Shown piece after piece: positions 5,353-26,193 of a stretch of 32,000 bases of DNA. The stretch covers positions 82,749 through 114,748 of the forward strand of contig NW_008806296.1 in assembly GCF_000400465.1 (NCBI RefSeq), in the 5' to 3' direction. Within the stretch, counting starts at the first letter, position 1, and every line of letters begins with the position of its first letter. Source of the stretch: Wallemia ichthyophaga EXF-994 (lineage: Eukaryota > Fungi > Basidiomycota). Both the position numbers and the translations under genes were made by a program. The notes under the pieces are model-generated. The model saw only the letters and a program-made list of their open reading frames with translations, did not search any database and was not told where the DNA came from.

Positions 5353-8300
5353 CTAATGTCCACTTCTTCCAATAGCCCGTGCTTCGTCTACTCTCGGTAA
5401 CTTGTACTCCCCTTCCCCAGTTGGTGCTCCCAGGAACTCCGCTTTGACCAACCACGCGACGTATAATCCCAACAAAGGCATATCAACCGTCGTCTTGACC
5501 TTCTCATCCGCCTTGGACTTCTTGATCAACTCTTGTGCATTCTTGTCATCCAGCGATGCACTCTTGGTCGACGTAGGCAGGTCATCCAAAACAAAGTGCA
5601 GCAATGGGAACAATGCGTTATCTCCAACTTCCATTACGTGCTTCTCCAGCTCTGACCTCCACACAAGATAGTCACTCGTCTGAACTTGATATCCGTATTT
5701 CTCCAGACATCCTAATAAGTCTGAGTAACGCACAGGTGGTCGAGCTGTTACGTGGACAACTCCATTACTATTTCCGTCTTCAACCCTACTCAGCATAGAC
5801 AGTGTTGTAAGTCTGGCGACGTGATCAACGGGTACCATGTTAACAAAGTTGTGGATATTTGGCACTTGTCCGAGTTGTACGCATCCCTTGACTAACCTCC
5901 ACAGAAAGTCATCCGTGTTTGTCACTTTTGCCTCATTAGATTGTTTTCATTAGTAGATCACCTCACCTACCTGCTGACTCTGAATCTCCAACAACGTACC
6001 CCGGTCTAACTATCGTACAGGCCAAGCCTCGCTTCGTGGCCTCCATCAAAAGCTTCTCGGCGACCCACTTGCTCTGTCCGTAACCAGTGCCAAGTCCCTC
6101 GCGAGCGCCTTCAAGATCATCTGACTCGAGCACACCTGAAGATTGACCGGACAGTGTCAATTCATCAGAAAGCTTGATGTAATGTTCAGTATCGAGTGCG
6201 GAAGTTGAAGACACAAATGACAACGCCTTAGCCTTCTGGTTGGCTGCCAGTTCAATAGCAGTCATTGTAGAGAGAACGTTAGCCGAACGAAGCTTGCCGT
6301 ACGAGTAAACCCAGTGCACAAATGCACCATTGTGAATTATGGCGTCAGAGTCACTCGAAAGCCTATTCCACTCCTTTTCGTCTAATCCAAAATGCTTAGA
6401 TTCAAGATCACCAACTACTGCCTCAACTCTGCCCTGCTTGACCCACGTCTCATCCCATGAATGACGCGCTGATCCACCCTGTCTGAGTCTGTTGATACCG
6501 TCCTCGTTCGATTTAGCACGAACAACACAGATTACTTTATCCACTCTGTCTCCACGCAACTTGAGCAGATCACGCAGAACAAAAGCACCAAGGAAACCAG
6601 TGGCACCAGTCAAAACCACAGTAAGCTTCTTGTTGTTCAAGTCTGATGGTAGTGCTGGGTACTTGTCAGCCAATCGAGGTATGAGAGAATCGAAATCGTT
6701 TCCGTAATGAACCTCATCCGACGCTGCTTTGTCATCCTTCTTCACACCGACAACGTCAGCATGCAGTCCGAGATCGGCTGCCTTCATTCCTTCAATTGAG
6801 TAGGCCAATCCTTCAATAGTTGGCTGCTCGAACACCAATCCGAGCGGTGCTTCAACGACGAGAGCTTTTCTTATCTCGAAAATCAATCGAGTCGCCAAAA
6901 TGGAGTGACCACCTAAATCGAAAAAGTTGTCATCTAAAGCGATAGATGATGGTGCTGAAGGAAGAAGATTCTTCCAGACATCGTGGATAGTTTGTTGAAT
7001 TGGAGTAAGCTTACGGTCGTCACCCACGTTTGTACGCGGCGTAAGAATAGCCGTATCTGGGAATGGCAGAGCTGGCTTGTCGATCTTACCATTTGGATTG
7101 AGTGGCATGCGCGTGAGTGGGATGAAAACTGAAAAATCTAGTCAGCATCATTCAAATAAAATACTAAGACTCACTAGATGGGATCGAATACGTTGGTAGC
7201 TTGGTTTTGAGATGCTCGCGCATGTTCTTGATAAGCTTACGGTAACGCTTCAGTCCTCTAGCAATCTCCCTTGAACGATCATCCTGAACGTCGTGACCTT
7301 CATCTTCGTCGTTACTCATGTATCCTTCAAGCTCGCTTGTTTCATTTGGAACAAAGTACGACACAAGAACCTTTTCCTCGTCCTTGTCACGTCTGACGAG
7401 AGTAACATTGTTTCTTACCAATGGATGAGCTGAAAGGTGAGTATCGATCTCACCCAACTCAATTCTAAATCCACGGATCTTGATTTGGTCATCTGCTCTA
7501 CCAGTACACTCTACCAACCCATCTGGGCCATATCTACCTAAATCGCCAGTTCTGTACATTCTGTCACGAATACCTTTCCAATATTTACTGTAGTCTGGTT
7601 TCGTTTCGGCTATGGTATCTCTCCTTTCAACGCCAAAGCCAAACCAATTCTCGGTGAATTTCTCCTTAGTAGCATTTGGATCTAAATAACCCTCTGACAG
7701 ACCACCTGAACGGACGTAAATCTCGCCGACTTCACCAACACCACATAGGACGTTCTTGTCCTGGCGATTAACAACAAGTAACTGCACGTCAATCATTCCC
7801 TGACCAGCTGGCATTATATCTTTTTGTCTACCGAGGAAAGAAGAATTAGCGTTAACTGAAGGGATAGAGTAGTATGATACTGCTCTTTGGGTCTCAGTTG
7901 TACCGTACATGTTATTTATTTGAACGTTATGAGCTAAAGCTTGCAAACGAGTACAGTCACGTTTAGTGAGGACATCACCAACAAAGAAGGCATTCTTGAG
8001 AGACGGTATGTGTCTAACGGCCTGAGCTGACAGTAACTGACCCATCGCTGGTGTCAAGTGTGTGACTGTGACTTGGGAATCCGCCATCCACTCAGCAAGC
8101 TGACCTGGTGTGCCAATATCTTCAGACGTTGGAACGTGCAACTCAGCACCGAGGAAAAGAGGTGTGAAGATATCTCTTTGGATAGGGTCGTGTGCGATAC
8201 CACTAAGCATAGTGAACTTTTCATCCTTTGTCAAATTGAAACGCTCAGACATCCAAGGGAAAAAGTGGGTGAGTGAGTAGTGACGACCCATCACACCCTT

Positions 8301-24229: not shown

Positions 24230-24409
24230 AGTTCAAGTAGCACACAGCACTTAGCACGGTCTTGATGACGACGCATCCTAGACCGACATGAAGACTGTCT
24301 GTAATATAATGTATGCTTTTATATTCTTACCTTTTTGCGTGTATGTGATGTATTTATGTCTTCTTGGTGTCTTCTGTGCACTGTCTCTTTCCGTCTTGAC
24401 TACCACCAA

Positions 24410-24751
24410 ATGCCTAGCCACTACAATACCCACGCAAGAAGAAGGCGGAACGCGTTGTGGCGCAAGAACATTATCACCGCCATTCTCTCTCTCATACTAG
24501 GATTTGTCTTGTTCAAAGTGCTCCAAGCTCGTATGAGCGATACGAGACCGCGAGTCACGCATGCGGACAGGTAAGCATGTTTCCTGCACCCACAACACCA
24601 CACTCATACACTCCACTACAGATACTCAAAAGAATACAAATACAGACCAGCGGCTAGCCCAATCGTCACCGAAGTCCTCGATGACGGTACTATCAGACTC
24701 CGTGGCGCAAACCACCACGACACGCATGCCGTGTGGAGAGATGAATTGTAA
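24410..24751 (+). CDS. 96-aa single-pass membrane microprotein of unknown function
   Basis: Exons 24410-24570 and 24622-24751 (51-nt GTAAGC..CAG intron) give 291 nt. A basic RRRR patch is followed by the hydrophobic segment IITAILSLILGFVLF and the tail YSKEYKYRPAASPIVTEVLDDGTIRLRGA. Confidence 0.72.
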
Positions 24752-25100
24752 CCATTCATATATCATTTCATATCCTTTCGTCGCGTTTGTTGGGTAGTGC
24801 TTTGGGCAGGCTTCATGCTGTCATATTGAGTGGTTTTGTGTTTCATTTTTCAATATGACATATCTTAAGACACTCAAAAACTCAATAAAGCTCATCTGAA
24901 TTTAATTCGAAAGATATGAGCGTAGTCATTGTCTTGTCGGAAAAGCAGAGGCAATCATAAAGAACATTAGTGTGGAAACATAACTGAATAAACTCGATTG
25001 TTTTATTCTTATACGAATTTCATTCGCTTCCTCTCCAGCTACAAAAATTAGCCTGCATCAGGTTAACTTCTACCAGAGTTAATTCCTTATATCGCTCTGG

Positions 25101-25115
25101 AAAAAAGGACAAAAA
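25101..25115 (-). terminator. RNA polymerase III terminator (T5, then T6) of the permuted tRNA
   Basis: On the minus strand, TTTTT (25115-25111) and TTTTTT (25106-25101) begin 13 nt downstream of the end of the tRNA 5' half. Confidence 0.7.
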
Positions 25116-25127
25116 CAAATGACACTT

Positions 25128-25205
25128 TACTAGTGATGCGCTACTACCACTGAGCTATATCTGCTGGTTTGCAGATACCAGGGATCGAACCTGGGACCTC
25201 ATCAT
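25128..25205 (-). tRNA. tRNA-Thr(AGU), circularly permuted: 3' half (nt 38-73, 25205-25170), 5-nt linker, then 5' half (nt 1-37, 25164-25128)
   Basis: Reassembled 73-mer: acceptor GCAGATA/TATCTGC plus A73; A-box TAGCTCAGTGG; anticodon stem CATCA/TGATG with loop CT-AGT-AA; variable loop AGGTC; T-arm CCAGG-TTCGATC-CCTGG. Confidence 0.9.
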
Positions 25206-25464
25206 AACAAGTAATCATTCGAATTGAAGAACCGTTATACTACGACTTCTCTGAAAATCACTTATTAATGCCAAAACAATATCTGCCAATAATAATAATT
25301 TAAAATTACCTCAAACCCACTTTGATCCGTCCAATTCATATAAAAGTAGAATAGCAAGAGCTGCTGTTATATGGGAAAAATCTAAATCTTTAGAAATCAG
25401 AATTAAATATTCTTAAGAAATTTGCTGATGGAGGTTCGATCTCCTGTTATCGAGTGCCGCCAGG

Positions 25465-26193
25465 ATGGTGAGTATAGTGGAGCGGGTTCAGGACGACAGC
25501 TAACACCAGCTAGCGTATTGATCATTGTTACTTCTGTTCTGGAAACGTATACCCAGGTCATGGTGAGTTTTGACGACGGAAAGAAGAAGGCTCTAACCAT
25601 AGCGACAGGAACTGCATTCGTGCGCAACGACAGCAAATACTTTAGATTCTGTTCATCAAAGTAAGTTCATTTTTCTACCTCACCAGCCCACCACTAACGA
25701 GCGAGCAGATGCCATAAGAACTTCAAGATGAAGCGTAACCCACGTAAGCTCAGATGGACCAAGGCGTTCCGTAAGGCTGCTGGCAAAGAGATGACGATTG
25801 TGGGTGTCGATCTATGGCTACGACTCACCGTCTAATCACTCACCGCAGGACTCTACACTCGAATTTGAGAAGCGTAGACACGTTCCAGTCAGATACAACA
25901 GAACATTGGTCGCAACCACGCTTAAGGCAATGAAGAGAGTTGGAGAGATTCGCAAGCGTCGTGAAGTTGCATTTTGGAAAAACAGAATGGCAGCCAACTC
26001 GCAAAGGCGCAAGCTGGCAGACAAGAAGGAAGTATCTAAATCTATTAATCTTCTCCCTGGTATCAAAGCAAGCACCAAAGCAGCCGCATCTGCTCAAACA
26101 GCAAAGCAAAAAGTCAAAGTACCAAAGAACAAGTCTTCAAATCTTGCTTCTGCAGGTGGTTCCGGACAAAAGATGACTATGGATATGGACTAA
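25465..26193 (+). CDS. RLP24: Ribosome biogenesis protein Rlp24 (eL24 family)
   Basis: Exons 25465-25467, 25514-25562, 25609-25660, 25709-25799, 25849-26193 (introns 46, 46, 48, 49 nt) give 540 nt. Sequence: [69 protein letters not shown]. Confidence 0.93.

Follow-up and report, generated by a model that had tools for sequence, protein, structure and literature searches.

Permuted tRNA genes are known from the alga Cyanidioschyzon merolae, four prasinophytes, the nucleomorph of Bigelowiella natans, and the archaeon Thermofilum pendens. Discussions of these genes have treated them as archaic relics or, alternatively, as oddities linked to unusual transcription and splicing machinery. In C. merolae, the two halves lie on one strand with the 3' half upstream, the junction corresponds to positions 37/38, CCA is not encoded at A73, a T stretch follows the 5' half, and the intervening sequence (7-74 nt) contains no terminator. 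The tRNA-Thr(AGT) gene of this alga is itself permuted, is listed as type II, and has an intervening sequence of 24 nt (Soma et al. 2007; PMC3978253). C. merolae also has many ectopic introns and is devoid of recognisable TFIIIC subunits binding the A and B boxes. In the prasinophytes (Ostreococcus, Micromonas) and in the B. natans nucleomorph, which belong to photosynthetic lineages and have several permuted isoacceptors in each genome, nearly all junctions are at 37/38, the linkers are 11-33 nt long, a relaxed hBH-type motif is suited to a ruler mechanism of the endonuclease, and the upstream promoter is AT-rich and ambiguous (Maruyama et al. 2010). In T. pendens, the intervening sequence can be very short (1 nt in tRNA-Tyr), the halves are joined at 59/60, the genes encode CCA, and an archaeal-type endonuclease is at work (Chan, Cozen, Lowe 2011).

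No permuted tRNA gene from a fungus, Wallemia included, is reported in the full-text literature searched (a 2026 review included; not all journals are covered). Only algae, the nucleomorph, and Thermofilum appear there, in agreement with the first-pass annotation of the present DNA, which knew of no fungal example. The gene described here, from Wallemia ichthyophaga, a member of a salt-loving basidiomycete genus, appears to be the first permuted tRNA gene reported in a fungus. It lies on the minus strand of a 32-kb stretch of DNA (the window), the open reading frames of which are eukaryotic and fungal in character, as befits the fungal genome named in that annotation.

In the tRNA sense, positions 25128-25205 of the window consist of ATGATGAGGTCCCAGGTTCGATCCCTGGTATCTGCA (36 nt, tRNA positions 38-73), the linker AACCA, and GCAGATATAGCTCAGTGGTAGTAGCGCATCACTAGTA (37 nt, positions 1-37), as obtained by direct reading and by script parsing (Table 1). 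The half order, the 5-nt linker, and the break at 37/38 proposed in the first-pass annotation are therefore exact. The complete 73-nt cloverleaf with an AGU anticodon that it deduced is also recovered, since ARAGORN accepts the swapped halves as a 73-nt tRNA-Thr(agt). The stems of this tRNA comprise 7 bp (acceptor), 5 bp (anticodon), and 5 bp (T), its anticodon loop reads CTAGTAA, and its T-arm is GGTTCGATCC. In circular mode, the native 78-mer yields the same tRNA with its ends wrapped as [42,36]. Direct reading further identifies U8, G18G19, U33, A37, the T-loop TTCGA, and A73.

With the C. merolae genes, the Wallemia gene shares the upstream 3' half on a single strand, the 37/38 junction, the lack of CCA at A73, the T stretch after the 5' half, and the terminator-free intervening sequence. 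It differs from them in belonging to a fungus, an opisthokont, instead of an alga, in having an ordinary canonical tRNA-Thr(UGU) intron in its genomic background, and in its deep within-genus conservation accompanied by covariation. Moreover, its intervening sequence is 3-5 nt long; as read across the lineages described below, the Wallemia linkers are the shortest seen so far in eukaryotic permuted tRNA genes. Compared with the prasinophytes and the nucleomorph, the junction is the same, whereas a single permuted gene is found in about 110 kb of Wallemia sequence. The likeness to T. pendens lies in the very short intervening sequence. We consider it highly probable that the locus is a functional nuclear circularly permuted tRNA-Thr(AGU) gene of type II (37/38, in Soma's classification), the product of which would be matured through a circle by the Sen endonuclease and a ligase.

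Table 1. Coordinates of the permuted tRNA-Thr(AGU) gene, its flanking features, and its counterparts in other lineages (window positions unless a contig is named).
Feature	Position	Strand	Sequence, parts, or basis
3' half, tRNA positions 38-73	25170-25205	-	A38; anticodon-stem 3' strand TGATG; variable loop AGGTC; T-arm CCAGG-TTCGATC-CCTGG (B box); acceptor 3' strand TATCTGC; discriminator A73; direct reading, identity script, ARAGORN; kept in four other lineages
Linker (A73-to-G1 intervening sequence)	25165-25169	-	AACCA; direct reading, script
5' half, tRNA positions 1-37	25128-25164	-	Acceptor 5' strand GCAGATA; D-arm TAGCTCAGTGGTAGTAGC (A box); anticodon-stem 5' strand CATCA; loop CTAGTA, last nucleotide A37; direct reading, script, ARAGORN
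Trailer and T runs	25101-25127	-	aagtgtcatttg, then TTTTT (25111-25115) and TTTTTT (25101-25106); Pol III terminator-like run
Presumed leader	25206-25225	-	RNAfold with and without enforced cloverleaf
Upstream element, candidate external promoter element	25232-25238	-	ATAACGG, 33 nt upstream of A38
Upstream element, W. hederae	L026 195-201
Upstream element, W. mellicola	L027 9769-9775
Upstream element, metagenomic species	L004 6804-6811
YrlA match, leader to trailer	25113-25221	-
YrlA match, W. hederae	L026 83-190
YrlA match, W. mellicola	L027 9649-9765
YrlA match, metagenomic species	L004 6817-6930
Permuted gene, W. hederae	L026 103-179	-	3' half ATGACG...TGGGCGCA; linker TTCA; 5' half GCGCTTA...CGTCACTAGTA
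Permuted gene, W. mellicola CBS 633.66	L027 9671-9746	-	3' half ATGTTG...TAGATGCA; linker CAC; 5' half GCATCTG...CAACACTAGTA
Permuted gene, metagenomic Wallemia-like species (31.5% GC)	e.g. L004 6833-6909		3' half ATCATG...TTGGTGCA; linker CTGAA; 5' half GCACTTA...CATGACTAGTA
Permuted gene, Logan contig ending inside the gene	L002 11308-11353		3' half, only ATGCA visible; linker TACA; 5' half complete

That standard tRNA finders would miss the locus had been anticipated, and across the whole 32-kb window no tRNA is indeed found by linear ARAGORN or by Rfam at gathering thresholds. In E-value mode, the Rfam tRNA model RF00005 gives the window gene 14.6 bits, against a gathering score of 29. Contiguous RF00005 scores are 13-18 bits in three lineages, all below this threshold; for the metagenomic contig L004, RF00005 is absent from the E-value-mode list and the best tRNA-clan match is beta_tmRNA (10.7 bits). 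The genome paper of W. ichthyophaga used tRNAscan-SE 1.23, which we would not expect to recognise a permuted arrangement. With linear finders blank here, counts of Thr(AGU) genes in Wallemia are possibly too low, and similar permuted genes may be hidden in other fungal genomes. A circular sliding-window search with ARAGORN revealed no other permuted tRNA in the approximately 110 kb of Wallemia loci.

The open reading frames of the window (GC 45.3%) include pieces of alpha-aminoadipate reductase, RPL4, PRP3, RLP24, and SIN1/AVO1. The GC content agrees with the published value of 45.35% for the 9.6-Mb W. ichthyophaga genome, and the RPL4 protein maps to scaffold KE007246.1 of NCBI assembly GCA_000400465.1. 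The RLP24 exon is 95% identical to the W. hederae protein and 92% identical to that of W. mellicola. The permuted gene is intergenic. Some 305 nt separate it from the first RLP24 exon that can be recognised (25514-25564), upstream of which it lies in divergent orientation; PRP3 is on the other side, with the tRNA gene about 1.45 kb downstream of it. A recorded gene model (24410-26193, plus strand, 268 aa, Ribosomal_L24e) overlaps the tRNA locus. Wallemia RLP24 orthologues have 178-187 aa and their alignment begins only at 25514; the 268-aa model probably joins RLP24 to a short gene lying upstream, ORF 24335-24574, which encodes a membrane-like protein and is conserved in L002.

Orthologous loci were fetched via the neighbouring proteins. 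The same permuted gene is present at the orthologous site between PRP3 and RLP24 in four other lineages, and the break is always at 37/38 (Table 1). The half order read in W. ichthyophaga holds for its sister species, as the arrangement is permuted at the syntenic site in W. hederae, W. mellicola, and the metagenomic lineage. In W. mellicola, the gene is found in 11 assemblies, those of CBS 633.66 and 10 further ones; the latter contain three alleles, with polymorphism confined to the T loop and the D loop. The metagenomic Wallemia-like species is AT-rich, its SIN1-PH domain is about 78-80% identical to that of each named species, and its gene occurs in 8 independent ENA metagenome assemblies.

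Halves joined in the wrong order during assembly could mimic such a gene. Apart from two contigs (L002 and L006) that end in or next to it, the case for this is a priori only, and the same order in 13 NCBI assemblies from three species and in the 8 metagenome assemblies, made with different assemblers, excludes an artefact, the probability of which we regard as vanishingly small. The two short-read contigs stop within the gene (L002, 11308-11353) or at its edge (L006, with GGTTCGA at 6657 in a contig of 6668 nt). These ends could reflect a T-arm or other parts repeated elsewhere, as in other Thr genes, or low coverage. No contig carrying the missing side of the Logan L002 gene was retrieved.

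The linkers of the five lineages are 3-5 nt long, all different, and without T run; none of them (AACCA, TTCA, CAC, CTGAA, TACA) encodes CCA directly after A73. Leaders, trailers, and linkers are unalignable and conservation ends exactly at A37 and A38. Among the five lineages, there is no variation at positions 32-37, nor in G1-C72, C2-G71, the T-arm, and the anticodon loop halves CTAGTA and A. G1-C72 and C2-G71 are identity elements for threonyl-tRNA synthetase. Conservation that stops at 37/38 is to be expected if the product is a tRNA cut there, but not if the locus is a remnant in decay or encodes a longer structured RNA.

Covariation was tested on the five-lineage alignment (A1), with 500 shuffles and slid-partner controls. 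In the permuted cloverleaf, 98.9% of stem cells pair. Double-sided changes are seen at six pairs, three of the anticodon stem (28:42, 29:41, 30:40) and three of the acceptor stem (3:70, 4:69, 5:68), all of which belong to the two helices joining the upstream and downstream halves. The observed values were matched in none of the 500 shuffles, and sliding the partners reduces pairing to 25-47%. G-U pairs of the acceptor stem fit the minus (tRNA-sense) strand only. Mismatches occur at U6-U67 in the acceptor stem of one lineage and at 13:22 in three lineages. This pattern of substitutions shows that selection acts jointly on both halves, as parts of a single RNA in which they pair as a cloverleaf. 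In the light of the comparative data, the locus is more than a curiosity, being a conserved gene that is selected as RNA.

These results bear on the possibility that the locus is an unexpressed relic of two tandem intron-containing tRNA-Thr genes, the outer halves of which have decayed, with intact genes elsewhere supplying the tRNA. Tandem duplication is the accepted model for the origin of permuted tRNA genes (PMC3978253), and introns at 37/38 are common in other tRNA-Thr(AGU) genes. However, a relic would not be expected to remain intact in five lineages with about 20% protein divergence and unalignable flanks. The six compensatory double changes between the halves argue strongly against a dead remnant, as does polymorphism restricted to loop positions. 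Moreover, no outer-half remnant is visible in the 250-nt flanks: local alignment of the flanks of each species with its own halves (500 shuffles) gave nothing significant. The best match is an 8-mer, GCAGATAT, at 25279-25286 on the minus strand, 81 nt upstream of the 3' half and identical to the first 8 nt of the 5' half. Of 500 shuffles, 82 score at least as high, and the other species lack any equivalent of this 8-mer. A relic is thus very improbable. When introns are allowed, ARAGORN proposes a tRNA-Leu(CAG) at 25170-25286 that uses the same 8-mer; this candidate was rejected as spurious, with a poor D-arm and variable arm.

In Rfam searches, the top match in four lineages is YrlA (RF02553), with 25.1-36.6 bits and E-values of 2e-6 to 3e-3, for a gathering score of 69. 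YrlA is the only Rfam model in which T-arm, acceptor, and D-arm follow each other in this order. The locus might accordingly be viewed as a tRNA-like non-coding RNA of the Y-RNA type, comparable to bacterial YrlA, or as a DNA element such as a TFIIIC-binding site, and never as a tRNA. In favor of these proposals, the YrlA matches extend from leader to trailer in the four lineages and the intact B box could bind TFIIIC. Nevertheless, the scores fall far short of the gathering score, YrlA is a bacterial family, and the leader-trailer stem, which would correspond to the Ro-binding helix and is a long closing stem in YrlA, has no conserved counterpart in Wallemia. The anticodon-loop halves of Wallemia, CTAGTA and A, are by contrast exact and invariant, and conservation stops precisely at 37 and 38. 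For a DNA-only element, RNA-type covariation with strand-specific G-U pairs would be unexpected. We therefore give a non-tRNA role a very small chance. The YrlA match evidently reflects the shared permuted order of T-arm, acceptor, and D-arm, a likeness of topology and not a family membership; the YrlA model could also serve as a crude screen for permuted tRNAs.

Signals around the gene were also compared. A T5-T6 run occurs within about 25 nt after A37 in every copy and none is found inside the gene or linker, which fits a single Pol III unit. Upstream, the motif ATA[AG]C(C)GG is found at -33, -22, -29, and -29 from A38, in the same orientation, in four lineages with otherwise unalignable flanks. 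Its background is 0.003 per 40-nt window, a significance that is inflated since the motif was defined post hoc. As a recurrent sequence motif, it is clearly non-random. The AACGG core resembles a Myb-type site. In the permuted gene, the B box precedes the A box, an order that, to our knowledge, TFIIIC is not known to use. With the boxes in this order, an external promoter would be needed for productive initiation, and the upstream motif is, speculatively, a candidate external Pol III promoter element.

In W. ichthyophaga, RNAfold indicates that the leader (25209-25212 and 25214-25221) can pair with the trailer (25116-25127) over 12 bp. Pairing of the G at -3 (25208) with C32 is also possible and would leave three nucleotides (-2, -1, and A38) bulged at the 3' cleavage site. 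A G that could pair with C32, with a 3-4-nt bulge at the 3' cut as the result, is located at -3 in two lineages; in two others, its position is -4. Some pairing of the leader with the trailer or with the loop can form in each species. Leader-trailer pairing differs from species to species and is weaker outside W. ichthyophaga, as judged with RNAfold. No strict bulge-helix-bulge (BHB) motif is conserved across the folded precursors of four lineages. At a canonical 37/38 site, ruler-type recognition by the eukaryotic splicing endonuclease is possible. The lack of a conserved BHB poses no difficulty if the cut sites are measured from the mature domain, as they are in yeast.

A maturation pathway can be proposed from these features. 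RNA polymerase III would start in the leader, read through the 3' half, the linker, and the 5' half into the trailer, and terminate at the T5-T6 run; a single transcript is suggested by this run, by the lack of internal T runs, and by the conserved upstream element. The cloverleaf would then fold, with the linker closing the acceptor stem as a loop and the anticodon loop open. By analogy with C. merolae and green algae, Sen would cleave at the canonical intron positions, on the 3' side of A37 and on the 5' side of A38. The fungal ligase Trl1 followed by Tpt1 would, again by analogy, join A37 to A38 to give a circle of 76-78 nt. Finally, RNase P would cut 5' of G1, a 3' nuclease would trim the linker after A73, and CCA would be added.

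Alternatively, a functional tRNA could be produced without any circle if RNase P and a 3' nuclease opened the linker first and the paired pieces were then trimmed by Sen and ligated in trans, in parallel with archaeal split tRNAs. With linkers of only 3-5 nt, the acceptor loop would be very tight, being formed in W. mellicola by A73 and 3 nt. Two separate pieces could be kept paired by the acceptor stem of 7 bp and the anticodon stem of 5 bp, and the sequence imposes no order on the steps. On the other hand, circles retaining the linker have been detected in every eukaryote tested, C. merolae and green algae (PMC3978253), and the sequence, which favors neither order, gives no advantage to opening the linker first. 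Maturation in trans is therefore unlikely, and the circular route is preferred.

The permuted gene probably derives from the tandem duplication of a tRNA-Thr(AGU) gene with an intron, and its origin predates the split of the sampled Wallemia lineages in this scenario. Among the 120 JGI metagenome matches listed for the 5'-half pattern (114 stretches), 53 are tRNA-Thr(AGU) genes with an intron exactly at 37/38, many of them on fungus-like contigs, and 46 are uninterrupted. No Wallemia-type copy is among the matches listed, a scan that is silent on canonical copies in Wallemia genomes. In the intron-containing metagenomic genes, the D-arm and anticodon loop are nearly identical to those of Wallemia (TAGCTCAGTGGTAG(T)AGCGC..ACTAGTA / A..., the slash marking the cut), including a variant with an extra D-loop nucleotide. 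The cuts fall after A37 and before A38, and the intron ends often resemble the Wallemia leader or trailer (for example ...gaa/A). In contrast to the permuted gene, these genes have the canonical order, the removed piece is internal instead of being a leader and a trailer, and a circle is unnecessary. W. hederae itself has a canonical tRNA-Thr(UGU) gene (L026 6707-6813, plus strand) with a 35-nt anticodon-loop intron, placed after position 36 by ARAGORN, and a T6 run directly after the gene. Thus, the 37/38 introns found elsewhere and this W. hederae gene indicate that a likely ancestor and the endonuclease and ligase machinery were at hand. Outside Wallemia, the RLP24 neighbourhood of Rickenella mellea is unrelated and gives no reading of the ancestral state of the locus.

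A Thr(AGU) decoder is needed, because 58% of the Thr codons are ACT or ACC in nine long open reading frames of the window. Canonical tRNA-Thr(AGU) copies may exist elsewhere in Wallemia genomes. A bolder and rather doubtful proposal is that the permuted gene is the sole source of tRNA-Thr(AGU/IGU), would be essential, and would be driven by a new external Pol III promoter overriding the reversed boxes. If so, translation in Wallemia would depend on tRNA maturation through a circular RNA, a first for an opisthokont and for a culturable fungus. Circular maturation would then be carried out by an otherwise conventional Sen/Trl1 machinery, and the 3-5-nt acceptor "loop" would be the tightest eukaryotic RNase P substrate known.

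Fungi are expected to use a standard heterotetrameric splicing endonuclease, a Trl1-type ligase, and TFIIIC. Genus-wide conservation in a basidiomycete indicates that a permuted arrangement can arise and persist in a fungus. Wallemia thus offers a culturable system for studying Pol III initiation with the B box ahead of the A box, the handling by RNase P of a 3-5-nt acceptor loop, and a possible role of circular pre-tRNAs of their own.

Two further observations concern tRNA-Thr(AGU) genes in JGI metagenomes. A second permuted tRNA-Thr(AGU) gene was encountered on the contig L083 (389-512, plus strand; JGI Ga0181573_10016878), with the 3' half ATCACGAGGTCAGCGGTTCAATCCCGCTTAAGAGCA, a 52-nt spacer, the 5' half GCTCTTATAGCTCAGTGGTAGAGCGCGTGACTAGTA, and a T7 run. 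This contig is GC-rich and encodes a K+ channel-like protein with ankyrin repeats; our guess is that it comes from a Micromonas-like prasinophyte, and hence represents a known kind of permuted gene. In addition, six distinct tRNA-Thr(AGU) genes carry inserts in the T-arm (L039, L046, L054, L060, L077, and L113, the gene and intron of L046 being identical in L130). These inserts of 50-85 nt are located at about position 52/53 or 53/54; their position is conserved and their sequence has diverged. They start with GTAAGT, GTGAGT, GTATGT, or GTAAAT and end with AG, most of them have CTGAC near the 3' end, and T runs are found 25-35 nt past the gene. By their appearance, they look like spliceosomal-type introns.
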